Shown: positions 402 to 39,702, counted from the stretch's first letter. The stretch is DNA of 64,000 bases from Convolutriloba macropyga (GCF_964194025.1 NC_134474.1:24490001-24554000), one strand, 5' to 3'. Made by a program: numbers and translations. Notes: generated by a model not told the origin, from the sequence alone.

Positions 402-3400
402 AGACTTGAGCTGATTGCGTAGAGTCTGTTCCCATCAAAACTGCTCTGAATGTTTCCACTTTCGGAACGGCTAAAGACTTTGTGAAGATGCCCGCTGCCA
501 TTTTGTCTGTAGGAACGTAATGAATTGAAATAATCCCATCCTCCGTCTTGTCCCGAATGAAGTGAAACTTTGTCTCGGTGTGCTTGTTCCTCTTGTGCAC
601 GACAAGGTTTTGGCAAAGTCTGATACAACTTTGGTTGTCCTCTCCAATTGCTATTGGATGTTTCTGATGGACGCCAAAATCCTCTAAAAGTTGTTTCACG
701 TAGAGTGATTCCTGTACTGCTGCTGCCATGCCCTGGTATTCTGCTTCTGATGAAGAAAGAGCAACTGTATCCTGCTTCTTGACACCCCAGCTGAGTGCTG
801 CGCCACGTCCGTTGAGCTAGAAGTAAAAACCCGTTGTTGATTTTTTGTCGTTCACATCTCCAGACCAGTCTGCATCACTTTCCCCCACTAAATCATAACT
901 AGACTCTTTTGTGTAAGTAAGTTTTAAACCTTTTGAACCTTGAAGATATCGCAGAAGTCGTTTTCCGCATAGCCAGTGTTGATTGGTAGGTGCGTTCATG
1001 TGCCTGGACAGAATGTTGACTGTGAACATGATGTCTGTTCTCGTCTGTTTGACCAGATGAAGAAGTGATCCAACCAAGCTTCTGTAGATCCTCTGGTCCA
1101 CTTCTTCGTCTCCGTTCTGTGCTGTCTGAAGTTTCAAACTCAAATCAGCTGGAGTTCTTGAGGGTTTGCATTGATCCATTTGAAACCGCTCAAGCATTAT
1201 TTCCATGTAGCGTTCGTGGTCGACTGTGGCTTTGCCCTCTTCTTGTCTGATTCTAAGGCCCCGAAACCAGTGTAGTATCCTTCTCTCTTCCATGTGAAAT
1301 GCTGCCTCTAGTGCCCTCTTGACATCGGAGATCACTGTCATACTTCCTGATGCTACTATGATGTCGTCAACCCAGACCAAGATGAAGGTGTGATCCTCTG
1401 TCTCTGATCTTGCGAACAAGCAGTGATCGTTCCTGCTTCTGGTGAACCCCTGTCTCACTAGAAAGTTTGCCAGCTCTTTGTACCAGTTGTTAGCAGCCTG
1501 TTTCAAACCATAATTTGAATTATTTAGTCAACATACTGACTTCTCCCCATCTGATCCGCGTTTTACAAACTCCTGTGGCTGTTCCAGATACACTTCTTCC
1601 TCGATTGGTGAGTGCAGGAAAGCAGTCTTGACATCAAATTGGTGCATCACATGGCCCTGCTTCGCTGATAGCTGAAGTAGAATCCTGAATGTCTCTGGCT
1701 TACAGGTGGGCGCAAAAGCCTCAAAGTAGTCCAGTCCTTCCACTTCTTTGAAGCCTTTCCCCACATAGCGTGCTTTGTATTTGTCGACTTGATAACTGGG
1801 TCCCAATTTCACTTTGTAGACCCATTTGCCCTGTATGACGTCCCTGTCTGTGGGTGGTCTCACTAGGTCCCAAGTCTTGTTGTCTTGGAGTGCCTTGACC
1901 TCGTCTTTCACTGCCCGGTACCACTGGTCCCATTCGTTAGCTTGCTTGGCTTCGTAGACTGTTTTGGGTTCCACATAGTCCCCCTCAGTCACAGCAAGAT
2001 GGGTCCTGACTTCTCCAAAGAATAGCGGAACATTCCTTGCTAGTGTCCCTCCTCTGGGCTCTGCCCTTTCCGCTTGCTCCAGTGCCCCTTCGAAGAAGCC
2101 AACTGTCTGCGAGAAGTCCTCCGTTTCACTGTCTTCCAGTGACTCAGAGTCTCTGAGACTCCCTCTTGTTGCAGTAGATTCTTCGTCCAGTGCTGCTTCC
2201 TCAACATCTGAGGCATCTTGTCTCAGTGTCGTTTCTTGAGTGTTCACGCTCTCTGCGTCATGCCACTCTTCCTTTATTGCAGTAGATGTGCCCTGCTCCT
2301 CCTTGTTGCCATCGTCTTGATGACCATTATCTGGGTGCCAGATCCCCAGTTGCTGTGACCCCTCATCTAGTAGGTCGGGCGTCTCTATGTTGTCAGGGAT
2401 TGAGCCCACTTTGGATTCCTTGATGATCACATCTCGAACTGCCACAACCGTAAGTGTGTTGGGTACGTCCACCAGGTATCCGTTGTCTCCTTCAGTGTAA
2501 CCCACAAACTTTCCTTCCAATGCCTTGGGTTCAAGTTTGCTGATATCTCTGTCCCGCTTTCTCATGAAGACTGTGCAACCAAAAATAGATAGTTTAATAA
2601 TTGAAAGCTTAGGTTTTATACCTCGCATCAGCTCTGCTGGGCATTTTTCTTCTCCTCGTCTCACAATCAAGTTCCTGATCCTTGTTGCGTGAAGATTTGC
2701 TGCTCCCCACATCATCTTGGGAAGTCCTTAGTCAATGAGGAAACATCTTGCCATCTCCAGCAGTGTCCTGTTGCACCTCTCAGCTAACCCATTCTGTTGT
2801 GGCGTCTCTGGTATGGTCTTCTCCTGTAGAATGCCTGCATCTAAGCAGTATGTCATGAACTGCTGTGAGAGAAATTCCTTCGCATTGTCTTGCCTCAGCT
2901 TCTTTGGCGTCCCCACACTGAGAACAAATTTCTTCAGGCTGGCCAGTGCTTCACTCTTTGCCTTGAGCAAATCCACAAACACAAACTTCGTGTACTGGTC
3001 TGCAAACACAATGCAGAACCGGAACCCTGGCAGTGAATCTACTCTGAAAGGTCCCATCACGTCTGTGAACACCCTCTCCAGCTTCTCTGCTGCTTGGGTC
3101 TCTGCCACTCTTGGTACTGGAGTCTTTGTTATCTTGGCCAATGCACACACATTGCATAAATCATCGAGTTCCTCCACTGTCTCTGGTGCATTCCTGACCA
3201 CATTCACTTGATTCAAATGACCCAATAGTCTGTGCCACTTCCTTGCACTGTCAAGTTTCACGCTGTTGGAACTCATCTTGAATTCTAGCACGCTGCAGGG
3301 TAAGTAAAACAAGTTACTTTCTTGTGTTAGTTTTACCCGAGTTCCCTTCTGGAGTTTCATGCAGCTGTTTCCTTTCTAAAAAGTGAAGCTATGTCCCCAC

Positions 3401-4583
3401 TCCGTGCATCTTGAGACTGATAGGAGGTTTGAAGACTAGTCCGGCACACACAAAACATTCTTGAGCTCGCATTGGAATTCCCCTTTGTTTGAGGGTATGC
3501 TGATTCTCGCACAGCCTCTGCCCACAACTCTGGAAGCCTCTCCGTTGGGATTTCTGACCACTGATTGAATGGGAACAAAGTCCAGGAACGCGTCGAGGTT
3601 TGTCACTATGTGATCTGTACAACCACCGTCCACTAGCATGCCTGCTGTCTTCCACTGGTTAAGAGCCGCCCAGCATTCCTCGTCTGGTGTAGCCATTGTT
3701 GGACCCATTGCCACTGACTCATGTTTGTCTCCATCTCTTTGTCTCTTGCATGCCTTGTCTAGGTGATCTTTGTCACCACATTTGCTGCATTGTGCTGTCT
3801 CCTTCCTCCTGCAGTCCTTGGCAAAGTGTCCAGGGATCCCACACACAAAGCAGTTTCCTTTCTTGGGTCCCTTCTTGAAGTCACGCTTCACTGCCAGTGC
3901 CACTGAACCACTTTGTCCCTTGTGCCTCTGTGCTGTGCTCTCATGGAAGTTCTGCAGCCTTTTCCTCAATTCTGTGAAGTTCGTTGCAGGGTTAAAGCTT
4001 TCCTGTATAACAAAATTTTCATACCTCATTGGCAGACCATTGAGGACCAAGGCGTTGAAGAGGGTCTCTCAGACTGCTTCCCCTGCTTCTTGTAGCCTTG
4101 TGAGCAACTCCTGTCCTCTGATGAAGAAGCTATCCAAATCCTCAGCATCCTCAAGCTGCAGTCGAGCAAGCTGTGCCACCAAAGTCACCACTGTCGGCGT
4201 CTCCACACTCTGAAATCTCTCTTGCAAAAGCTTCCAAGCCTTTGCTCCAACTCCGATGCCGTCATCTCCACACAGTCATGTCTCATCAGCATGAGGGTTG
4301 TTGCATCTAGAGTCAGTGCCAGATGGCACCACACATTGTTCCTTTTCCCCTTGATGTCTGCAACTTCCTTCCCATATGCATCCTTCAGCACCTTATGGCT
4401 CTTCTTTTCATCGTTGCTCGCCACATTGGCTAGTGGTGCAGGCTCTTTAGGTTGCTCCTCTGTCCCAGGTAGTGATTTGTAGAGTCCCTTCGTCTGCATC
4501 ATTGCAACAAATCTTGTGCTCCAGATTGGAAAGTCCTTTGCCTTTCCTGTGTAGGTAAGCAGCTTCACTGTCTGTTGATCCAT
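400..4583 (-). pseudogene. copia gag-pol polyprotein, disrupted
   Basis: Two CCHC knuckles (CFVCGIPGHFAKDC, CSKCGDKDHLDKAC), protease LVDGGCTDH, pre-integrase WHRLLGH..CNVC, integrase D-D-E (TDVMGP/QDNAKEF/GLAERCNRTL), RT (KWVYKVK, QFDVKTAFL, WVDDII), RNaseH (DADWSGD, EDNQS). ORFs 400/817/1528/2728/3436 share one frame separated by premature stops; one frameshift near 4270 in gag. Confidence 0.95.
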
Positions 4584-4699
4584 CGTAGTTTGAGCAGGCA
4601 AAACAGTTGTAAAAAGTAAAGGTACTAAGCAGAAAAGGATTATGACTGTCAACAACAAATTAGTTTTGTTTTAGAAATTAGTTTTAAAACTTAGAAAAT

Positions 4700-15909: not shown

Positions 15910-17998
15910 ACAAAAAATTAATTTGGAGTAAAAAATGTGAACAGTAGGATTGACCATCAATAATTAGTTTGTCCATCATATGATATTTATATTACCATTA
16001 TCTGAGAAAAAAATTTGCATGAGCTTTTATCACGCAGGCTGATGTAACATTTTTCTCGCGGGGGTTCGTGACTGTCTTAGACTCATTCTGTTATTAAATC
16101 AATTTATGGTAATTACAGGTTTGCGTTTCTTTCAATAAGTTGATATCTGTATAAAAGCTAAACGCAAACATTTGAGCAAACATAATTTACGTTTTACCAT
16201 TAAGGAGACATCCCCGCTCTGAGGCTACATACAACGTGCATCATGGTTTGGGTTCATTTGACATGATGAGTGAAAGACGTAAAACTGTCATAAAAAACCG
16301 AAAACGAATTAAAGAATAATTTGATTGAAGGGCACAATTTTTGCTCCTACCACCAAACATTTTTCAAGTACCATAAAACAGCAAAATAGTCAGAAAAAAA
16401 GAGGGTTTTAAAACCAAACAATGATTTATTAGCTCAGAAAATATTTTCAACTGTGAAAATTGAGTTCGCACAAAATATCGGATGTGCTTGGAGGTGCAAA
16501 ATAATCGGCCAGAGATGACGACAGATGCTTTTTAGCATGCCCTAAATCAGCTGAACATTTACATCACTCAGAGGTTTGAGGAAACAAAAAAAGTTTCTAA
16601 GCCCTTATCTCAGCATGATAAAGCTCTACTAAAAAACCATTAATGATCTGAAATTAGTCCCAAAGAAAGAAATGGGCAGTAATAGTCTGGCCAATATAGG
16701 CTGGATTGAAAACCAAGTGAAAATCTATGGATAATTTTGTTGCTTCGTTTACGAAAATTTATCGCTTCACTTTTATTCACGATAAAAAATGGCAACGTTA
16801 ATGGAGGACAACAGCGATGGAAAAAATGTGAATATCATTTCTCGTTTTCTCGGATTAACGTAACGCATGTCCGCGATGTTGAGCAGTCAGTTAGCTTAAG
16901 AGCCTCATTGCCCAAATTCAAAAAATAATACCTTGAGACTTAATTCAGACTTGTTTATTCCTGTGAGCCGCGATATTTTTAGTTGCTAAATATCTAAACT
17001 TCTAATGGTCTTCTATAGCTACAACCAACTGCAAATGGTCTTCTTAATCATCCATTAGTAATCCAATAAAAATTGCCACTAAAAATTAATCACAATAAAA
17101 ATTAATCACTAAGCAGGCGTTCTTTCATTTCGGTCTAATTTAACTTGTTAACTATCGTGCTTAATAACCGCGGACAAAAGTGACGCGTTGAAAAAGTCTG
17201 ACTAGAAGCCTGGACAAGGGCACCAAAATCTTGTCGCTGTTGTCCACGCTCGCGCATAAACAGGCATCGTGACAAATTGTGCCCGATAAGTTCAAACTTG
17301 AAGCCAATTTAAACAAAACTTGCTTACAGTTGAGATATTGGCGATCGTTTTCCTCAATTATGCAGCTTGCCTGCATGTCATATACTTCACGTAGGCAGCC
17401 TTCAACACGTACCTTGATCTTTTTTTCAGGAGAATATTTCAATATTGGATAGAACACAAGGCATGTTATATATCATGGTTTTTTTTCATTAATCAAATAA
17501 AGCTATGTCTTTTCATCGTCTTATAATTTTATCACAAGGAGTCTTAAATTTCAGTGACATTTTTGAAGTGAAACGACTTGTCCTGCCAGATTCCAAGAAA
17601 CCTCAGACAAACAAGGTATCTAAAGGAGGATTAAAATTCTCCAAATAACATTTCACACCATCGGAAGTTGCTAAATTTTGTTCTGATGTGTTACGTCACA
17701 GCATTTCATTTTAAGCATTATTAATATCAACCTGTAAACTGCGAAAGACCCTTCTGTTCATCAAGTAAGCCAGCTGATTAGCCGCACCACATGTGAAAGC
17801 TACCTCTCCGTCCCAACTTTTAAAATAGTGTTTCGGAAAAGATTACAATTAAAAGACAAGCCCAAAATAGCCTCCTAAATTCCAGTGTTTCCAGATTTTC
17901 TAGTTTTAGCCCCAACCAGTTTATCATTCTAAATGTATCAAGATAATTTATTTAAGTTACACAGTCATTTCGATCGGTAGTGCTGATTGATGTTCACA

Positions 17999-18832
17999 TT
18001 ACTGCGCTGGTTTGTTGACCAAGTAGACTTTGTTGGATTTCAAGACATTGTCTCCAAACTTGTACTCTTGCTGGACACCGTCCCACGATGCTTGCCATCC
18101 TTGTTTCCCGTATCTGGGCTCATTCAGGTACGCAGAGACAACGTAGTTGCAAGCCGAGATCACATCCCAAACTGGGAGTCCACTGCACTCTCGGATTGCG
18201 TTAGCGTAAGGAGGCAGCTCAGTGCACTCCAGCAAGATTGCCTTCACTTTAGGGTACTTTACAAGGGATTCCTTAACAAGTTGTATCATTCCCGGTTGCA
18301 CCTTAGCAACATCAACTTTGTCGCCCGCAGCAACGGCTTCAAATCCGGGGACGTTTTCACACCCGACAACTCTTAGTCTGTCGTCAACGACGCTGAACCC
18401 GCAAGCCTTCTGGAATGCCTCGTTCATCTGGCTGAGTGCAACTCCGTTTGCAGTCATGATGATGATTTCATCAACGGGAGAAAGGGTCGCCTGGATGGAT
18501 TTCAACTGAAGCAGGGAACTCATCACAAAGCACACAGGTTTGGTCTTGATAATGCTCTGGGCAATATCCTGGAAGTAGACCATGAATCCGCAATCACCAG
18601 TGATCACATTCACTTTCTTGGTGTTGATGAGCCAGTTGCAAGATTCTATGAACCTCTGCTGGACAGCAGGGGTCAGCGATCCACTTTGGGCCATTTCGAA
18701 GGTGAACCCGGGGACCACTTTGTAGTAGACATCGTAGCCGTAGGTATCCGGACAGTCGATGTCCCCGCACGCAGGAGGGTAGTCATAGTCCAATCGGATC
18801 ACACCAAGAACGGGAGCTGGTTTCAGACTCAT
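17999..18832 (-). CDS. Alma-family DMSP lyase-like protein (Asp/Glu racemase superfamily), 277 aa, intronless
   Basis: Signature LGVIRLDYDYPP.CGDID.P..YGYDVYYKVVPGFTFEM, both racemase-fold cysteines (ITGDCGFM; LLECTELPPY), VPGFEAVA.GDKVDV, GLPVWD, C-terminal WQ..WDG.Q.EY.FG, as in haptophyte/dinoflagellate/coral Alma proteins. AATAAA on the minus strand at 17947-17952. Confidence 0.88.
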   Translation of the reverse strand: MSLKPAPVLGVIRLDYDYPPACGDIDCPDTYGYDVYYKVVPGFTFEMAQSGSLTPAVQQRFIESCNWLINTKKVNVITGDCGFMVYFQDIAQSIIKTKPVCFVMSSLLQLKSIQATLSPVDEIIIMTANGVALSQMNEAFQKACGFSVVDDRLRVVGCENVPGFEAVAAGDKVDVAKVQPGMIQLVKESLVKYPKVKAILLECTELPPYANAIRECSGLPVWDVISACNYVVSAYLNEPRYGKQGWQASWDGVQQEYKFGDNVLKSNKVYLVNKPAQ

Positions 18833-20397
18833 TGTGTGAATTAAGTTGAGTTTTTGTGTTTATCTCACAAATTTTTTGCTTCAGAGGAAGGCAACTGTTT
18901 TTCAGAGAGACTCTGGCAATACTGATTCCGAGTTCGGTTCTAACTGGCTCTGCCACTCCTATGGTATCACGTTGCCCAGAAGTGCCAGATTTCGCGCCCA
19001 CATATTTGGCACAAGTATCGCAATCCAACGGCAGCTAAATCACGTGGAAGTAGAATTGGTATAAAAAATAGGGAAATACTTTTGCAAGTCAGAACCATGG
19101 AAGCAATGCATAGTTTAGATCACACAGGCAGACAAAATATACCAATTAACGGTTTACCATCAAATTTTATGCCGTTGATATCCGCCTATGTTTTTTGCAA
19201 CCGACACTTATATCAACATCTGCAGTGGAAGATCATTTCTGAGCTCGAAGATATAAACTCCATACCAATTCCACCAATGACATTGTTTGTTGACGAATTA
19301 TCTGGCTAACTTCGCCGGATTGTTTTCAAGTACAATCACGTTGCAACTTATCATTGGTGCAACTGCTATGGTTCTCCAATCGTATAAGCTTTGTTGGTAC
19401 AAAATTAAACCTTGAAAGCTTTCGGCAATTTTCATTGATCTTACTCTTGGGTGACTTATAAAAGTGACTGATAGAAAGCAGTAGCCTTGCATTTTTGCAC
19501 AGCATGGCTACTAAGGTTAAGATGAGAGCAAAGACAGCGTGGGGATACTAACGATTGATCTCAACACTTGAACTCTTTTGAAAAAAAGTTCAATCCTAAA
19601 GAAATATAGAACACTCGAAGCTAATGAAAATAATAATTGAACACCTGGTTCATAAATGTTATGTTTTATATATGGTGACATTAGTGAGAAGTTTCAATTG
19701 AAAAAAAATCTATTTTCTTTTTAAATATTTAATAATAATTTCAGCTACGCAATGAATTTTTTCCGAGATTTTTTTTGACTTCGTTGTTCTTCATAGCGAT
19801 TAAAAATTTTTTGGAGTGGGGTTGACTAATATATGGAGGCAAAGTCGAGCAGTTATCTTTTACCTGCAGAACTTCTCATCTGCACACTGTACACGAAAAC
19901 TTACCCTTACCTGCACGAAAATTTACCTATACATTAATCAGAGTGCAAGGCAAAACAACCATTCCTATTTGAAATAGTGATCATGCAAATTAAGCAATGA
20001 TTCGGATTTAGAACAGGAGGCTAATGTGCATTTGCATGTCGAGTTCCGACCCATTCTTTCAATAGTCTTGTTGACTTTGATGCAATTGAGCAACAGATTC
20101 TCTCAATTTTAAACCAGCTCCCAGCCCAAAATTTTTGGGCTTTCGTTTTTATCGACAATTTAATTCAGTTTGTGTCACATCAGCATTGTATTAAGTTTTT
20201 CAATAACTTTTCTCTGATACTAAACTTTCCCCGCTTTGCAAAATATACTGATCAGCTAAAACCGACTGTTGAACGGAAAAAAGCTAAGGTGTTAAATAGT
20301 TCCTTCCAACGTTGTTGGGTCAAAACAAGAGGTGCTTCATTTTGAAATTATTGAAAAGTAATAGATAAATTTTCAATTGGTTATATTTCAATGAAAA

Positions 20398-22283
20398 TTA
20401 TTTACAAACAGGAATCAGTGCATCATTTAAAGATTTGGATACAAAACTCGGTACAGATTTAGAATCACCGCGAGATACAACTTCTTCAACATGGTGCAGT
20501 TTATGATTACCAGTTTGAACTAACAAACTTGCGATCGGATTTGGTTTTGCCGAGTTTGCAAACAAAATGTCAGTGTACAGAGTATCACCAACCATAAGAG
20601 TCCGTGATAGGTCAATGTTTGTACCTCTAAACTCATATTGAACATGTTCCCACATGTATGGCTCTGGTTTCCCGACGTACGTCGCATTTCGACCTGAACC
20701 GGATTCCACCATTTTGATGATAGAACCTGTTCCACAATTTACTATTTCCGGATTTGAAGTTGGAAGTCTTGCATCGGTGTTAGTTCCAATAAAAACAACG
20801 TCATCACGCACAAGGTAACAAGCCGCAGCTGTCGCTTTTGCGTAGTTAAAGAACCAATCAGCGCCCACTATAACACAGCCAACTGATGGATCTTTCTGGA
20901 AAAACTGCCAATCAGGTATCATTTTCGGCAAGTCGACATCAGAAGCTCCGATTGATTTGAGACCTATTTTTTTAAGTTCTTCGCCTAAAGCTGGCATGCC
21001 AACGTAGAAAACGGTGGTCTTCGATTGGTCCGCTTTTTGATTCATGAGTTTGTATGCATAATAAGCAGCCGAAGAACCGGATGTTACAATGTTTGCAGGA
21101 TTTACAGGAGTGAAGCCGAGCTTCTTGAACTTCTCCGCGTATTGACTGCGAGATTTGGATGAGTTGTTAGTGATAAATAACACCTGACCAAATAAACCAA
21201 ATAGACCAAATAAATTTGAAAAACCACTTTGATTTAAATGCAGCATATACTCATTGCTAAAAAACCCGGTGACCGTTAGTTGCCTGTATTTTCTATGATA
21301 TGAACCCATTTTACCCCCCAAAAACAACATTTAAGCATCTCCACATGTTTATGAAAAATGCTAGGAACGACACCAGATATTTTAAACATTAAAAATATAA
21401 CTACGGATGAAAGGTTCCGAAAGGCGTTCTTAAGAGTTATCCCAAATATGAGTCAGATCGTATTCTTTTCAGCACAACCCATGTAATTTGAAAATCGATC
21501 AGCTTTTTCTATTTATATCCAAAACCCGTTTAAAAGCTAACTAATTCTCTCATTTTGGACACTGTTACTCATGAATTAATAATTTTCATTTTCTTTACAC
21601 GTTGTCATGTAGATGAAATGAAATACGATTTAAACTCAACACTAATTGATAAGATACAGGCGCAGATGATAAGATACACATGCAGACTAGCATGATAAAA
21701 TTTTGATCATAAACTTTGTGCCAGCTCATAACTCTGCAAAACCTAAGCAAAAAAATGTATAAAGTTAGCATCATCCAATACTCGAATGTATCCATGTTTG
21801 CCTTATAGGTGTCTTAATTCGGCAAGAAGTATTATGCTCAATACTAACTTGCTTTTGGTTTTCCAGAAGAAAATTGATGGCGTCAATGGACCCGCCAATG
21901 GGTTTATCACATTCCCACAACACTCCATCGCAATCAAACAAAAATGTGTCAAACGAATCCAGCAAATGCTTTCTATCCGCATCGTCGCTAATCACTTTGT
22001 AGGGCGGCTTGCCACTCGCCATTTTGGACGTATACTTAGATAACAACCGATATTGTTGGTTTGATCGCTGCTTCTCTAGCAGATTATATGCAGTTGAATT
22101 ATAGCAGTGATTACACAAATGTGACCTATAATCACCTTTCAAATCGTATCTGAATTGAGTAATACTTCGTTTGGATATTTTAAACAATTGAACTGTATGT
22201 AAGTATCTAGATGTGGCCATAGATTGCTTGAAAGCAACTGACAACGAGCAACAAATGTAATATTGTACAGAACGTAGACTCAT
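20398..22283 (-). CDS. PGP: Phosphoglycolate/glycerol-3-phosphate phosphatase-like HAD class IIA hydrolase; exons 22283(or 22022)-21849 and 21183-20398
   Basis: FLFDCDGVLW (DxD), FITNNS, VGKP, MVGDTLYTDILF, LVQTG. Phase-0 intron GTTAGT(21848)...CAG(21184). 319 aa from the Met at 22022, or 406 aa from 22283. Confidence 0.9.
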
Positions 22284-29606: not shown

Positions 29607-30731
29607 TTATTCCCAGGCATTCAACGTTCTTGTTCCGCTCATGGGCCTGCTACAGGACGAGCTACCGGGATAATCAGTTATTCCAGCAATATTTTTAGAT
29701 TTTGAGCAGTTCAAAGCATACCTTACAAAATCTCTATGTTCATTTTCCAAAGTATCTTTTGATAGAAATTTAGAGCTTTTCACTTTCTCCAGACGCTGTA
29801 AAATTTTACTATTTTCTTCATCGATTTCCTCAAATTTCTTGGACCTGTTAATTCCAGCACTGTGACATCGTTTGAAGGCCGCTTGTGCTTGCGAGCCGGG
29901 ATAAAGAGGCTTCCGGTGGGGCTTTTTCAGTTTAGAAAGCAATCTTTGGTTTTCTCTGTCAATTTCTCTGGCTTTAAAGGCACTTACACTCAGGTTCTTC
30001 TTATTTGTTCTTCCTTGTTGTTGAAGTCTCAGTTTTCGATTAACTGAGCTAAAGCAACTTTCTTGATCATCGTCATTATCAATTAACAGCACATTTTCCA
30101 AAATTTTAGAAATATCCGAAGCATCAGTTGTCGGGTTAAGGATTTGTCTGCTTGAATTCGGAACTCCTCTAGACGAGGCGCCTGATTTTGGTCGTGTTGA
30201 TATTGAATTAGCTCCTCGTTTTGATTTGCTCACTACTCGTTCACGGGGTAATAAACCCGATGGAAGATTTTGCTGTTTCGGTTTTGCGTACGATGATGAG
30301 TCCTCGGTAACAGACTCATCTGATGACGTCAGAGGTGAGACATCAGTAAGACGCGCTTTCTCATCTTCCTCTTCATCGTAGAGCTCTGAACGAGCAGACG
30401 GCAGTTTGATTCCATTAATAACTAAAGACTCTGAAAACCTATTATCCACTTCATCGTCATCTCTGAATTTCGCACTTCCTGAAGATCCTACAAAACTGTC
30501 TTCGCTTTCGACACCGGATAAAAAATCGTCTTCGTACGCAGCACTTTCCCTCAGAATTTCTGTTTCTAAAGGCCTTGATGATTTTGTAAACGTTTCGTTT
30601 AGGGTCTCAGTCTCGGGTGAATCAAGTCTATCTTCGTCTTCGAAGAATTTGAGATCGATGCTCTTAAAAAGCTCTTTGTCATTGTACTTGCTATTAGATT
30701 CGGTGCTATGATTAGACAGCCTGCTACTCAT
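29607..30731 (-). CDS. CFAP97: Cilia- and flagella-associated protein 97 (KIAA1430/Hemingway family), 374 aa from ATG 30731
   Basis: Acidic Ser-rich N-terminus, then KNLS....AREIDRENQRLLSKL...HSAGINR.K..EEIDEEN.KILQRLEKVK and C-terminal AWE. Splice acceptor ttcttcag 7 nt upstream of the ATG. Confidence 0.85.
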   Translation of the reverse strand: MSSRLSNHSTESNSKYNDKELFKSIDLKFFEDEDRLDSPETETLNETFTKSSRPLETEILRESAAYEDDFLSGVESEDSFVGSSGSAKFRDDDEVDNRFSESLVINGIKLPSARSELYDEEEDEKARLTDVSPLTSSDESVTEDSSSYAKPKQQNLPSGLLPRERVVSKSKRGANSISTRPKSGASSRGVPNSSRQILNPTTDASDISKILENVLLIDNDDDQESCFSSVNRKLRLQQQGRTNKKNLSVSAFKAREIDRENQRLLSKLKKPHRKPLYPGSQAQAAFKRCHSAGINRSKKFEEIDEENSKILQRLEKVKSSKFLSKDTLENEHRDFVRYALNCSKSKNIAGITDYPGSSSCSRPMSGTRTLNAWE

Positions 30732-31549
30732 AGTCGACCTGAAGAATAAATATCGGTGGGTTAACAAACCATTTGCGAACTTCTTGATTTCCTTTTTTAT
30801 GAATAAACAATTTGAAGCATTTTTCGAGCAGTTTTCAGTAGGCCTTTAAATGTGAAACTTGGCTGAAAACTTCAAAACAATCTTGTTTACTTCATTTCAA
30901 CAATTTCTCTGCATTTCTGTGTTGCTTACTTGTTTTCGCTTTTAGTAAGATCAAACACCTATGATCAACTAGAGGATTAAATTTTCAAAGTTAATCCATT
31001 GACTGAAGAAGATGAACATTCTCTGCAAAGTTCTTAAAATTATGTCTGCTCCTTATTTCTTCAATATTCTTCATTCACTAAAGTTTTCTCAATTTGGACT
31101 TGGTCAAAAACAAAACAGTTGTAATTTGTGAGAAAATAGTTTTGCCAATTGCCAAAATATAAAGCAGGACCTAAACAAAACAACTCATATACAAAAAGAA
31201 AAGAGAATCTCTCAAACTAAAAATCACTGCGAAGTGGAATAAGTTGCCCTCTCGAGTTAGAACTTTGAAAACTGAGCCTACACTAAAACGTGCTTTGAAC
31301 GGTTTCCTTTACGATTAATTTGCAAAATAAATTACAATAGACAATGTTCTCTTGAATCTTATTTTTATATCTGGAACCTCGGTGTGATCATTACAGTTAA
31401 TTCAAAATAAATAAATGCAGGGTGATTTGTAAATTGCTATTTTAGCATGCAAGTTTTCGACACAACAGTTATGCTTTCAATTGCCATGTCTCCTCCAGAA
31501 AACTTTTATTTGAAAAAAAACGGTAGGAATAAATCAATCTCACTAACTC

Positions 31550-33698: not shown

Positions 33699-36600
33699 TC
33701 ATCGGTCCCCAGATCCAGAATCCTCTTTCGCCACAGAGAAATACTTATCAATAAGAGGATCGGACAGAAATTTGTCCATGATTTCAGCTTTAGCCGCAGT
33801 TAGCACTTCCAATCCTCCGTCTTTGCTAGGGACCATAACACTAAACTGGTCAAGGAATTTTGTCAACATGGTGAATTTCTCCGGACCACCGGATCCCAAA
33901 TCTGCAGCTTTATACCATTCAAACTCAGGGTGATTCCAATTAGTCACAGAGTAGCGAGTTGTATACATCATACTCGCAAATTTCAGTGTCTTATCCATTG
34001 AAATTTTATCAATTGTTGACTGTACGAAATCATGGTTAATAGTCAAAACTCGGTTGCGAATTTTAGCTGCGGTATCAAACATTGTTTCAGACTTCAAATA
34101 ATCCAATGACCATGGCGTATCAATGTTTACAATCATGTTTCCAAAGTATGTCACTGGAACTTTTGGATTACGTCTAAATCTTGAATTACATGCAATCTGT
34201 AAGGGCAACACATTGCCTGGATTGCCGCTGGTTTCAACTTCACCAGCAATAGCATAGGCTCTGAAGAGTAAGCTGATTAGACAATCGTTACTGGATGGTT
34301 CGACGTCTTTTAGCTTTGATTGTTCACGCAACGTGTACACATCCTGTTTCAATTTCCTCAGACTCTCAGGGTCAATTTTGAGGATTTTCGCTTTCCGTTC
34401 ATTTATCATCATATCTTGTAAATACGTGGCAAAACCTTGCTTGTACACGTCATCTGGGATAATGGTGAATTCTGGATGCTCGAATATAGGCTCCTTCCCT
34501 GATGGTGAGTTAACCTCAGTTCTGCGACAGACAACTACCTAAATAAACCATTGGAAGAGTCAAATGTCACAGCCCACGGGCGGCAAAACTGACTATTTGA
34601 TATTTGGTGAGCTCTGCATGGGACTGTGAACAACACTTACGGCTTTGATAACTCAAAATGCAACCATACGTGATTGCATACATATGAGTTTTGTCGCTTT
34701 ACTTATTTGTGCCAATAAATACGCGTAGTGGTGTTTCATAATCTATTCGTGTGAAATACATGTGCGCTCAGAAATTAAAGATGCTGGTTAGTCCGCGGGT
34801 CACTCACCTTTAGTGGGCATATTTTCGGCCATTACTTGTATGTGCTGTTTTTACTAGTAGCATTCCATACAGCAATAGAATTAGCAACTAGTAAAATCGA
34901 AACATAGATCTTCATCGTGCATGATTGGTTACTGCCATTTGTTTAGTTCTGATCAAAACTAAGATATTAATGGTTGCTACACTGATTTAACTCATATTTG
35001 GACACAAAATATATCCATATTAACTTTCAAATTCAATTAATACAAAAATTTCACTTTCATTTTATACAAAAAAAATAGACCGTGCGATAAGATCTTAGAT
35101 GTAATACAGAATGCTGTTATTGTTGAATGGGGGGGGGGGGGGGCAGAAAAAGGGGGATGGTGTCCAAAACCTAGATTAAATCAAAATTGCTTTCATGCCT
35201 TTTGGAGCTCTGCTTGCTCGCCAGCTTCGGTGAACCGTACACTTAGAGTCAACTAAAGCTCTAAGAGAACTGGTCAGACACAATGCCCTCGGGCTTCACC
35301 AGTTAATCACAATTAAAAGAGACAAAGGTCAACTTAAATTATTTCCGAGAAAAAGTTCAAACGGAATGGACACTAAGCTAGGATGGTGCTAGATTCTCCA
35401 TTCAGACCCGTCTCATTTTCGTTTCTAATATTCTTCAGATACTGTCTTCAAACAGCCATTTAAAATAAAATTAAGTTTCCAAGCATTTTTCTGCCAAATT
35501 TATTATAAGTTTTCATTGCGAAAACTACACGTGTACATTTCAAAACAGCTAATTTAGCATAGTTTTTCAAAAAAAATTAAAGCCAAGTTAAGAACCCTAG
35601 CGAAGTATTATAGTAGGTAGAGAAGTTGAAGTCAATTTATCGAGGGCCACATTCAAAAGGTTTATACGATTCTTGGCTAAAACAGTCACCTAAGTGAAAA
35701 ACACGAATGACAACACCAGGATCTTTTCCGTTTATGCCCCCCCCCAGTACGTTATACACCCCCCCCCCCCTTAGATACAGAGTACGTGTCATTACATAGT
35801 AAATCATTATGTAAAAATATTGCAAGTGCGCCTGGGGGTGCAAATAATATATGCACCCACTAAGCTTAGGGGGAATGGTCACACAAACTCAACACCCATA
35901 ACCACAAAAGATGAATCGATGATGGATAAAAGCCAGCAATATTTTTTAGTTGTGAAAACAAAGAATCAAGATAATAAGATTGAGATAGTTGGAAAAGTGA
36001 TAGTATCAATAATCAAAAATCCATTAATACTTGATCAAGACAATGATCTATCAATTTTCATCTTGTCAAGCTTTTAGAACACAAATGCGAGAAATGGGTC
36101 CAGAGAAAAAAAATCGGCTGCCTCGAGATCTCTATCTCTTATATTTGCAACACAAAACGCAAACTAATGATACATTTGGCATGTTTAATTGCAAAACCTG
36201 ATTAGCTTGAAAATACTATTAAATAGAGAAAATGGTATTTTGGCAGAAGAGGACAGCTGAGAACAGGCTACTGTTAATGCACTGCAGACTAAAAAGCCTA
36301 ATGCTGCTCCGCTGCGATTACGCAGAACCAAAATTATTATTATCAAGCTATAACTATAGCTTAATCCACACGTTCAATTCTGAACTGCATTTTTATTTCG
36401 AAACTTTATTGTTTATTTCACATTAAGGAAACATTAAGGAAATTTCTTCAAATATTCCATGAGTTTGTTAACTTGTCCCATAATTTTTAAGCATCACTAA
36501 AATCTGGAATACCACTGTACGGTGACTGAACACGCTACTGTGCTACGGCTACCAGTAAATTGTCGATGTTTGTAAATCAGATTAGGGGAGGAATAACAAA

Positions 36601-39600
36601 CAAAACTAACAGCAATTTTTAACCGCACGAAACTAGAAGCACCAGAATTGAAACCTGATTTTATTGTATTTACGACGCTATACGCCTGAAAGGTGAATTG
36701 ATACAAATTAAAAATTCCTTAGCCAGAAAAAAAGCTAAAATTTAAAATTATATAGTTGCTCAAAGCAGCTGTGAACTTTTTGTATCTATAAACAGTATTA
36801 CACGCCTTTGACCCTACTAAAACAACACAGATACTAGGCAGAAACTCACGGTAATTAGCTTCAGCCTAACAAAGCCATCGATGATGTCAGTCATATTTGA
36901 AAAATCTTACTTTTTCCTCTTCGAAATGAAAAGCATTTGATCTGACTTGATGTGAGAAATCAGCGACAAAGAGGTAAAGCGAATTGATATCACAAAGACA
37001 ATGATGAACACCGTAACTGATGACCATGCCTGAATCATCGGCTAGATTCTGGACGGTTACTTTCAACAGATACTCATCCATTAATTGATCATCGACGTGA
37101 AAGTTCTCCACGCACAGTTTGTAATCAAAGCCTCGAGATTTCAGCTCAGAGAGCGAAACCACGGCTGTGTCCAGGAATTGGACCTGAGCACCTTCATTGG
37201 TCAGATTTACGACCTCTTTTTCGAGATCGATTCTGTAAAAAATACATGGGTAAACTTTGTTGATTCTATCAAGAAATTTTTCTGACTACTAAAAAACCTC
37301 ACTATTTGCTACGGTAGCCGTAGCAAAACCTCACTTCTTTATTCTTAAATTGCTCAACCGTTTCCTTGCTTTTTTATTTATGTGATTAGTCATTTGATGT
37401 TTCATCTCAATGGTATTCATCTCGTTCGAAATCGACCAAAAGTTACCAAATTAACACGACTCTGTTGAAAAAATGGGATCCATTCTGTTTCCCCCTCCGC
37501 TTAGTGGGAATATATGTTTTAAAACCAGCAGCTGTGCATTATTTAATAATGATAATAATCAACATAGCCGGCAGATTGCCGAAAAATTGCCGCGATATAG
37601 ACGCTTGTGGCCTTCCATGAATTGAAACAACTAAAGAAACAAGATAGGCAGATTGAGCAAAAGTCCTTTAGTAGACTAGAATTTTTGGGTTATATACATA
37701 CTGTCAATTTTATGATACACATACGGTCTATAAGGAAAAAACCCTGAAAGAGCTTTTTCAAAACTGATTTTCGAAATCAAAAACTCAAGACTAATACTCA
37801 AGAATTAGGACATATAAGTTTGGCACTACTTAGATGCACACTATTGATCTTTAACTAGTAAATGTTCATTAAACAAAATTCCATAAGTGAGTTCAAAAGT
37901 CATTTTTTGAGTGAGGAAGTCACGCAATTGAACTAAAAGCTGAAATGACGTCACGCAGACAAATTTTAACTGCAAAGCAGTAGAAGTCGCTGAAGTCATT
38001 GAAAAAGTCAGGGTAAGACAAAACAAAAATCTGTTAGACGACGTAAAAAAACATAGTAGGACAAGTCCTGACGTACAATTCAAAACGTTTTCATTGACTA
38101 AACAAAAAACTAGACTTAGAAAGGACTATTAGAGTGAATTGGGAAAACCATTTCTAAAAAAACTCAGATGAAAATTTAAAAAAAAAACAGAAAATCAACG
38201 CCAAAATGGCGCATGTGGACAAAAAATCACTAGCGAGAAATGGAAATTTAGTTGAAACAAAAAACTAGGCGTAGAATGAACTATGAATGGATTGGGGAAA
38301 ACCATTTAGAAAAAAATCCGATCCAAAAAATTGAAAAAAAAACAGTAAAAACCAAAGTGAAATTGCCGCATGTGAACAAAAAACCACTATTGAGAAAGCG
38401 AATTTTTGTTCAAACACCGTTTTCTCACTCTACTTTAAAATTAGAGCACAAAAATTTCACGCCGCAAAACCACTCGCATTTTCGCTCCATTTCCTGTTTC
38501 GGCGTGACCAAAATCACTACTCCAATTTGACTTCAAAAATCAGGAAAATATGTAAACAGATCTTAAAAACAGACAGCGCCCCAACACAATTCAAATTCTT
38601 TGAATTGTAAAAAAAATTAGGAGCGCAATAATAGTCGCCTGGAATTGCTGATGCGGCTATTGATAAATCAGTATTTAGGGTCAAGTCCAGGGGAGTTTTA
38701 AGTCCCTAAGCAGTTTGTCAAAGTCGAGTCTTTTGGTATTACTGCACCTGGAACAGCCACAGATAATTCTCCAGGTACAAGGTCGTTCGGAGTCATATTT
38801 GTAAGTGAAAAATTTGAAGATGTTCATCAGTATCTCCTTGGCTTTGCTGATTTCTAACTAATCGATTTAAGTGTCAAGATGGGCACCCAGTAAATTGGCC
38901 AGTTTTCAAAATGTGAGCCAACTTACAATTGGCTCACATTTTGAGATAGTAATGTGTTATATAACACAATTTGTAACTGCGGGTCATAACAAACACTTGG
39001 GGAAACAGAATAGATCCAAAAGTTGATACACGGATAAGCTGTTAGATTATTCGGGTAGGCGAATAAGGAAAACATGTTACGGCATTTATATGCAAATGTT
39101 TTATTTCTTTTGCTTCTAGGTAATACTTAATATAAGCTACCTGAACAACTTACAATTGGCTCACATTTATCGTTCGACAATGATCAATTTAGAAAAGTGA
39201 ACAACATTTATCAATTTAATTTTTTCAACAAGAATTTTCTGAGCAGATCGATCTTTCGCACAACATGGACTCCCTAAGGTTTCATATGGTGCTTGCGAAT
39301 CTCCAGACAAAATGAATTGGAAAATAACTTGACTACTTGAAGAGCATAATATTGTACCAGATTTGGTCCCTTTATCTTGTCAGCAAATCGACAAGATCAA
39401 TTAATGCATTCTATAATGTTGGCAATCTCTCTGCTTTTATAGCATTCAACAATAAACAAATTATGATTCAACAGCTGAAAGCAATACCTCCCGCTAAGCT
39501 CTGGGTACCGGTTCAGTGTAGCCTCTAATGCTCGCAACAGTTGTTCATCTTGCACTTTGTAATTGTAGAAAAACCAAACATGAAAACGGAATGGAGGCAT

Positions 39601-39702
39601 CATGGTGTCGAAGCAACACAAAGAACTTTCTTTACCATGGTACTCAGAGTGGTTGGAAGCTTTCACCAATGATGAGCTTCTGACAGCAAACTTGCTGGCC
39701 AT
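33699..39702 (-). CDS. BAHD-family CoA-dependent acyltransferase (Transferase family), 458 aa; exons 39702-39488, 37232-36911, 34538-33699
   Basis: Spliced frame is continuous (215+322+840=1377 nt, GT-AG introns, phases 2 and 0). Motifs: YPELSGR (YPLAGR), NEGA, catalytic HCLCD (HxxxD), FEHPEF, NSRFRRNPKVPVTYFGN, VTNW..WYKAADLGSGGP (DFGWG-like), PSKDGGLEV. Confidence 0.88.
37561..38661 (-). mobile_element. HINE of the same family, in BAHD intron 1
   Basis: Starts AACATAGCCGGCAGATTGCCGAAAAATTGCCGC and ends GCGGCTATT. Shares internal GAGTGAGGAAGTC and AAATGACGTCA blocks with 24541-25039. Confidence 0.7.

Follow-up and report, generated by a model that had tools for sequence, protein, structure and literature searches.

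The stretch of DNA analysed here (the window) comprises 64,000 nucleotides of pseudomolecule C7 of the photosymbiotic acoel Convolutriloba macropyga (C7:24,490,001-24,554,000), and contains no N. The genome of this species spans 1,175.98 Mb, with 15 pseudomolecules (PMC13650328), and its symbionts are Tetraselmis, according to a preprint (bioRxiv 10.64898/2026.03.06.710013). At ~24.5 Mb, on the minus strand, lies a single-exon gene encoding a 277-amino acid homologue of the Alma family of DMSP lyases (DMSP-lyase homologue, DLH; Table 1). Both canonical catalytic cysteines are present in its product; in a 62-sequence alignment, the glutamate preceding the second of these (E202) is invariant, and C203 and T204 are at least 90% conserved.

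The genes nearest to the DLH gene are those of an animal. A HAD/PGP-like hydrolase gene and a BAHD-type acyltransferase region (33699-39702) share the strand of the DLH gene, and a CFAP97/Hemingway exon is found further along the window; the Ty1/copia element at the other end is probably degraded. At 17137-17258, ~0.7 kb downstream of the DLH gene, a contig skips 120 bases (ends AT..AT) in all three DNA-like sequencing runs, likely an insertion/deletion polymorphism or a haplotype difference.

Base composition sets the open reading frame (ORF) apart from its surroundings, with a GC content of 0.50 and 0.48 in the two 500-bp bins that cover it, vs. 0.33-0.38 in the flanks, and a third-position GC content (GC3) of 0.60, vs. 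0.35-0.40 in the adjoining host exons. The orthologue of Symsagittifera roscoffensis type has a closely similar GC3 (0.61), and as the high value is common to both genes, it represents a maintained property of the gene rather than a sign of recent arrival. No A-run longer than four residues, the trace that a retrocopy might leave, was found downstream of the DLH stop codon.

An initial annotation, made from the sequence, had described an intact, intronless ORF of 277 amino acids with a GC excess over its flanks, the motifs GDCGF, ECTELPP and RLDYDYPP..GDID, a downstream AATAAA, and a setting of animal genes and retroelements. The ORF was confirmed at 17999-18832 (no strand had been given), as was the GC excess (0.50 vs. 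0.35-0.37); all three motifs are present in the translation, and domain matches verify the HAD/PGP-like gene, the CFAP97 exon and the Ty1/copia element. The AATAAA hexamer also exists, but the sole poly(A) tail seen lies ~120 nt further downstream, at 17828.

Table 1. Features of the window (positions counted from its first nucleotide)
Feature	Position	Strand	Basis
Ty1/copia element	817-4658	minus	gag zinc knuckle, Pol beta-barrel, integrase, RVT_2 in two pieces, over several ORFs
3' UTR, ~171 nt, to observed poly(A) site	17828-17998	minus	untemplated T run in a contig of run X5
AATAAA hexamer	17947-17952	minus	sequence; not adjoining the observed poly(A) site
CDS, Alma-family DMSP-lyase homologue (DLH), 277 aa, single exon	17999-18832	minus	ORF, ATG to TAA, no internal stops
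Cys203 codon in ECTELPP, second canonical catalytic cysteine (= Alma1 C265)	18224-18226	minus	sequence
Cys81 codon in GDCGF, first canonical catalytic cysteine (= Alma1 C108)	18590-18592	minus	invariant column, 62-sequence alignment
5' UTR, ~69 nt, to apparent transcript 5' end	18833-18901	minus	X5 contig ends and adapter
HAD/PGP-like hydrolase, host neighbour, two exons and intron	20398-22283 (20398-21330, 21771-22283)	minus	Pfam Hydrolase_6, Hydrolase_like on both ORFs
CFAP97/Hemingway ciliary protein exon, host neighbour	29607-30767	minus	Pfam PF13879, E 3.8e-11
BAHD transferase exon	33699-34448	minus	Pfam Transferase, E 5e-13

Transcription and constraint

Evidence of transcription comes from a run of 2016 (X5), which belongs to a separate study under the same organism code and is catalogued as 'DNA?'; no available run is catalogued as RNA. 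Word depth in X5 reaches 11,000-33,000 only at ~17,700-19,000, amounts to ~100-140 over the HAD exon, with ~0-10 outside it, and is near zero elsewhere. The boundaries of the covered segment are sharp, depth falling from above 10,000 to 0-5 beyond 17828 and being zero from 19006 upward. Directly before 17828, one X5 contig contains 23 untemplated T residues (plus strand), corresponding to a minus-strand poly(A) tail, and two contigs run into Illumina adapter after 18901. Given the exon-only coverage, the poly(A) tail and the adapter, we read X5 as RNA-seq-like. Its coverage, so read, reveals a DLH mRNA that is unspliced, polyadenylated, ~1,074 nt long and far more common than the transcript of the neighbouring gene, contig depth being a rough measure of expression. 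The HAD exon near the DLH gene is also transcribed in X5.

Comparison of the window gene with the S. roscoffensis-type orthologue yields a dN of 0.148 and a dS of 1.87 (ratio 0.08), and seven of the eight allelic single-nucleotide polymorphisms in the runs are synonymous. The gene is under strong purifying selection.

An Alma-family gene of the host

DLHs have been defined by a racemase domain together with two cysteines, one in a DCGF or NCGF and the other in an ECTE or ECTQ context (Shemi et al. 2023, PMC10349084). The window protein contains GDC81GF and EC203TE, and its racemase domain is matched, in both cases below threshold, by Pfam PF01177 (E 1.5e-3; 18.8 bits vs. a gathering threshold of 31) and PRK07475 (E 2.3e-45); the best folds in the PDB are those of Glu/Asp racemases and arylmalonate decarboxylase (probability 1.0, TM ~0.5). 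It is nonetheless placed outside the glutamate/aspartate racemases (PF01177 sensu stricto), given its 18.8 of 31 bits and a TM of 0.42-0.54 at 10-18% identity, and outside bacterial PRK07475 (NF005679), against which it scores 154.9 bits vs. a cutoff of 231 and has ECTEL rather than ECS[LMV]L.

Eight of the ten DLH-discriminating motifs of Shemi et al. (Table S1) were compared with the protein by simple identity counts, without the authors' STREME thresholds, and the best ungapped matches (12/14, 9/11, 8/10, 7/9, 7/11, 5/7, 5/11 and 4/9), five of them close and three weak, agree with its membership of the DLHs. On most motifs, PRK07475-type controls fall behind the window protein; they equal it on EAKGVSGIT, equal or surpass it on ILTANSKSLKP (up to 8/11) and, in one case, equal it on PPYADAL. 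In a search with an AlphaFold model of the protein (pLDDT 94.6) against Swiss-Prot AlphaFold models, Alma proteins occupy the first ten places, including ALMA6, ALMA3 and ALMA7_EMIHU (47% identity, TM 0.93-0.95), and Symbiodinium Alma (P0DN22) superposes over 274 residues with a TM of 0.94 and an rmsd of 1.3 Å at 40% identity; glutamate racemases remain below a TM of 0.5 in the same search. A PDB sequence search with the window protein returned no match at E up to 10, no Alma structure having been solved. Within the Asp/Glu racemase superfamily, the protein falls in the Sym-Alma/Alma3-7/coral subfamily; it lacks an N-terminal extension. The cysteine contexts, the motifs, the structure match and the tree described below bear out the assignment to the Alma-type DMSP-lyase homologues that the initial annotation had proposed.

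An ORF that is intronless, far richer in GC than its flanks, and related mostly to algal proteins might be symbiont, prey or bacterial DNA misjoined into the host assembly. The read data speak against this, as the DNA depth over the gene (64/30/67 in three DNA-like runs from two samples) is similar to that of the flanks (53-97), with no coverage break of the kind that a chimera would produce and no gap in the window, and host genes lie as close as 1.6 kb or less. The gene also has copies elsewhere in its own genome, where a search with the window protein gave 26 exon-level matches, on C1, C5, C7, C9, C13, C15 and C607, representing at least eight DLH loci. Intact intronless paralogues are found on C15 and C9, along with a 97%-identical copy on C607, while C5 contains two multi-exon paralogues and others lie on C1, C13 and C15. 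Joining five exons of the C13 gene, across introns of 4.9, 0.7, ~33 and 15 kb whose ends are of GT/GC-AG type, gives exactly its RefSeq protein. Misjoined foreign DNA would not be expected to have paralogues on five other chromosomes, interrupted by spliceosomal introns that reach 33 kb in length; nor would one expect orthologues with the same GC3 (0.61) on chromosome-scale scaffolds of S. roscoffensis, the grouping of all acoel sequences in a clade of their own (100/100), or the rejection of an alphaproteobacterial sister group (p 0.009). Contamination is effectively excluded, its likelihood being close to nil, and we estimate the probability that the gene is a host-encoded, expressed member of the Alma family at about 0.97. 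The initial annotation had likewise taken the gene to be encoded by an animal, had guessed at a photosymbiotic acoel as host, and had pointed to Symsagittifera, all of which proved correct.

NCBI names for C. macropyga paralogues (C15, C9, C13) are LOC142352850, 353064, 346237 and 351956, and RefSeq labels acoel DLH genes solely as 'uncharacterized protein'. One of the multi-exon paralogues occupies C1:19,656,598-19,661,052, and two more, plus a fragment, occupy C5:59,699,349-59,782,323; several of the C1 and C5 exon matches contain in-frame stops in a six-frame search, and some of these copies may therefore be pseudogenes.

At least six named S. roscoffensis genes belong to the acoel DLH clade; the six named proteins fall in clusters at 82% and 58% identity and are encoded on chromosomes of 62-85 Mb. 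The cluster of the closest orthologue (P0002) comprises four NCBI-named proteins on three S. roscoffensis chromosomes. In an S. roscoffensis-type assembly (ENA ERZ25071366 ctg22275l, 294,905-319,472; L013/L014), this orthologue is present twice, as 99.9% identical, inverted copies ~11 kb apart. When 8-30 kb of the window were compared with loci of S. roscoffensis type (L013-L015, L036-L038), only low-complexity matches emerged, the available flanks (6-8 kb) being too short for such long-intron genomes.

Placement in the family and possible donors

Domains for phylogenetic analysis were drawn from 327 proteins (two database searches) and from bacterial loci; Alma1/2 and Tetraselmis sequences were left out. 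Since a quick free search with 108 rows missed a better tree, our conclusions rest on a careful 69-row maximum likelihood (ML) tree, in which the DLH ingroup is separated from PRK07475-type bacteria (outgroup) by a split with 100/100 support. The window protein lies inside the DLH clade, apart from PRK07475. All eleven acoel rows constitute one clade (100/100) with three subclades, and the window gene is found together with S. roscoffensis LOC134844896-type sequences and metatranscriptome transcripts.

Such acoel-type DLH transcripts (P0003/P0004 clusters, L121), 75-80% identical to the window protein, occur in JGI metatranscriptome 3300018986, ERR1712027 and ERR1712226, datasets that we take, from their numbers, to be Tara Oceans. 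Their presence suggests that pelagic acoels express a DLH gene in open water.

The sister of the acoel clade is a 25-row clade (97/81) containing Acropora, Porites and open-ocean plankton, one of the plankton sequences being derived from a Tara Oceans metagenome; the link between the two clades reaches only 89/37. This proximity raises the question of whether acoel and coral genes share a single origin, be it an old animal gene that was widely lost, a transfer between animals, or one common donor. A forced acoel+coral grouping is not rejected by the AU test (p 0.30 with 69 rows, 0.78 with 108 rows), and both groups possess intronless copies of ~277-300 amino acids with the tail W..WDG..Y.FGDN..LVN. 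However, the ML tree nests corals within the plankton-containing clade and leaves acoels outside it, and the AU test tolerates a grouping of acoels with dinoflagellates equally well (p 0.29). Published metazoan records of the gene, moreover, are limited to Scleractinia and Corallimorpharia (PMC7783167, PMC10349084), so that vertical descent would need very many losses. We consider a shared origin improbable. The coral-independent acquisition envisaged in the initial annotation is what the ML tree shows, although acoel+coral monophyly withstands the AU test.

From the patchy distribution of the gene, we infer a horizontal origin. The trees favor a donor among eukaryotes and a gain independent of corals, the latter corresponding to the best tree, though not significantly so. 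The DLH family would have been gained in the acoel lineage before Convolutriloba and Symsagittifera diverged, a marine protist being the most likely source, by horizontal transfer. Two specific donors were considered and set aside. An alphaproteobacterial source (Roseibium-type DLH-like genes, 46-49% identity) is rejected (AU p 0.009), while the Tetraselmis symbiont is disfavored by inspection, as DEP domains, an internal insertion and ECTELPHFSAP characterize the published DLHs of T. striata and T. suecica, which lack the W..WDG tail of the acoel proteins. No DEP domain was found in the candidate 'ECTELPH' representatives.

The search also brought to light full-length genes of DLH rather than PRK07475 type in marine alphaproteobacteria (L039-L044; e.g. 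L041:1462-2325, on a 287-kb contig of Roseibium sp. MMSF_3544). Their hosts are one Roseibium isolate and metagenome-assembled genomes assigned to Salaquimonas, Alphaproteobacteria and Pseudomonadota. The encoded proteins share 42-49% identity with the acoel protein, contain DCGF and ECTEL, and in five of six cases the W..W.G tail (L044 ends before it); together with two further sequences they form a clade of their own. In published work, bacterial homologues are regarded as inactive and used as an outgroup (PMC10349084). Sister to this alphaproteobacterial group (97/91) is P0146, a DLH homologue of 316 amino acids recorded both in a 'viral metagenome' (UniRef A0A6C0AVL0) and on 0.22-3 µm Tara scaffolds; the contigs that carry it reach 182 kb, and it may be an Alma-like gene encoded by a giant virus.

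Predicted function and relation to known systems

Alma1 and Sym-Alma convert DMSP to DMS and acrylate, a reaction that requires two cysteines and has been proposed to proceed by proton abstraction beside the carboxylate, followed by beta-elimination (PMC10349084, PMC5395565). We propose that the window gene encodes a cytosolic Alma-family DMSP-lyase homologue, in which Cys81 or Cys203 would remove the alpha-proton from DMSP that the Tetraselmis symbionts supply, and that beta-elimination would then free dimethyl sulfide and acrylate in host tissue. Judging from its family, the protein is probably a DMSP lyase. The literature searched gave no value for DMSP in C. macropyga itself. For S. roscoffensis, a 2014 review (Bailly et al., PMC4183113), citing van Bergeijk and Stal (2001), describes an animal rich in DMSP, DMS and acrylic acid, whose symbiont exhibits no DMSP-lyase activity in culture, and leaves open whether the lyase comes from the worm or from bacteria.

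A genuine host gene of the Alma family need not encode a DMSP lyase. Its racemase-type active site with two cysteines could act on some other small carboxylate, for example by racemization, isomerization or elimination of a different symbiont-derived or dietary metabolite, the lyase activity being contributed by bacteria, a source that Bailly et al. explicitly keep open. Activity has been documented only for Alma1, Alma2 and Sym-Alma (PMC10349084, PMC5395565). In the paralogue assays of Alcolombri et al., activity beyond that of Alma1 was confined to E. huxleyi Alma2 and one Symbiodinium protein, and proteins of A. millepora and P. antarctica, as well as other E. huxleyi paralogues, were inactive (PMC5395565); the closest named relatives of the acoel clade (Alma3/6/7 at 47% identity, corals at 51-54%) are among the inactive proteins. 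The family is also large and diverse (1607 representatives at E <0.001), making sub-functionalization plausible, and the presence of at least eight paralogues in one genome suggests diversified roles. Against this, the active Sym-Alma superposes closely on the acoel protein, with both cysteines and their contexts conserved, and a lack of solubility might explain the negative assays. A bulk metabolic enzyme would be in line with so high a transcript level, and the metabolites reported from S. roscoffensis, together with the inactivity of its alga, are in keeping with cleavage by the animal. We regard a function other than DMSP cleavage as less likely than lyase activity, though not remote.

On the preferred interpretation as a DMSP lyase, the abundant transcript of a host Alma-family gene would make the worm itself the likely source of the DMS and acrylate released. 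A highly expressed, conserved gene of this kind is the obvious candidate, in concrete molecular terms, for the lyase activity that was measured in S. roscoffensis and was absent from the cultured alga (PMC4183113).

Two papers restrict Alma-type DMSP-lyase genes, among animals, to corals (Scleractinia and Corallimorpharia; PMC10349084, PMC7783167), and in the literature searched no paper ties acoels to such a gene, beyond the 2014 review in which the question is posed (PMC4183113). Acoels are thus the second animal group known to harbor Alma-family genes, adding a new, photosymbiotic phylum in which the family is both expressed and expanded. They also provide a tractable laboratory animal for studying what DMSP cleavage by the host does in symbiosis, defence or oxidative stress, and a possible case of convergent gene acquisition by corals and acoels. 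The most far-reaching interpretation, to which we give somewhat less than an even chance, is that photosymbiotic acoels gained an algal-type DMSP lyase horizontally and independently of corals, and expanded the family, and that the worm's enzyme makes DMS and defensive acrylate. If true, one enzyme family was recruited twice by animals farming DMSP-rich algae, and the DMS and acrylate of 'mint-sauce worms' come from the worm rather than the alga or bacteria, which would answer the question left by van Bergeijk and Stal (2001).

Several characterized or annotated groups can be compared with the acoel protein. The bacterial PRK07475 proteins (NF005679), its best NCBIfam match, share its superfamily, length and DCGF cysteine, but possess ECS[LMV]LPPY and a different N-terminal motif, lack the C-terminal tail, and have been reported to be without DMSP-lyase activity (PMC10349084). 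Alma1 and Alma2 of E. huxleyi have the superfamily, the two catalytic cysteines and DCGF in common with the acoel protein, at 24-28% identity and a TM of 0.76-0.80; Alma1 differs in having IECTEAGGF rather than ECTELPPY and internal insertions, and in lacking the W..WDG tail.

Sym-Alma (P0DN22) is closer, exhibiting the same fold, both catalytic cysteines, a single domain of ~280-300 amino acids and a C-terminal ...WDG...Y.LGDN. In contrast to the acoel protein, which has GDCGF and ECTE and no leader, Sym-Alma has SDCGF and ECTQ and an N-terminal leader of ~30 amino acids, and a third active-site cysteine has been reported for it (PMC10349084). Sym-Alma is biochemically active, whereas the acoel protein is a predicted lyase.

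The highest similarity to named proteins is to Alma3/6/7 of E. huxleyi and to the coral 'DMSP lyase 7-like' proteins of Acropora and Porites, relatives with no demonstrated DMSP-lyase activity (PMC5395565). The coral copy examined is, like the window gene, a single exon in an animal genome, and the DLH family has expanded in the host genome of Acropora (PMC7783167) as it has in C. macropyga. The acoel clade, however, stands outside the clade of corals and plankton, and some acoel paralogues contain long introns, either acquired or retained. The two cases also differ in host phylum (Xenacoelomorpha vs. Cnidaria) and in symbiont (Tetraselmis vs. Symbiodiniaceae).
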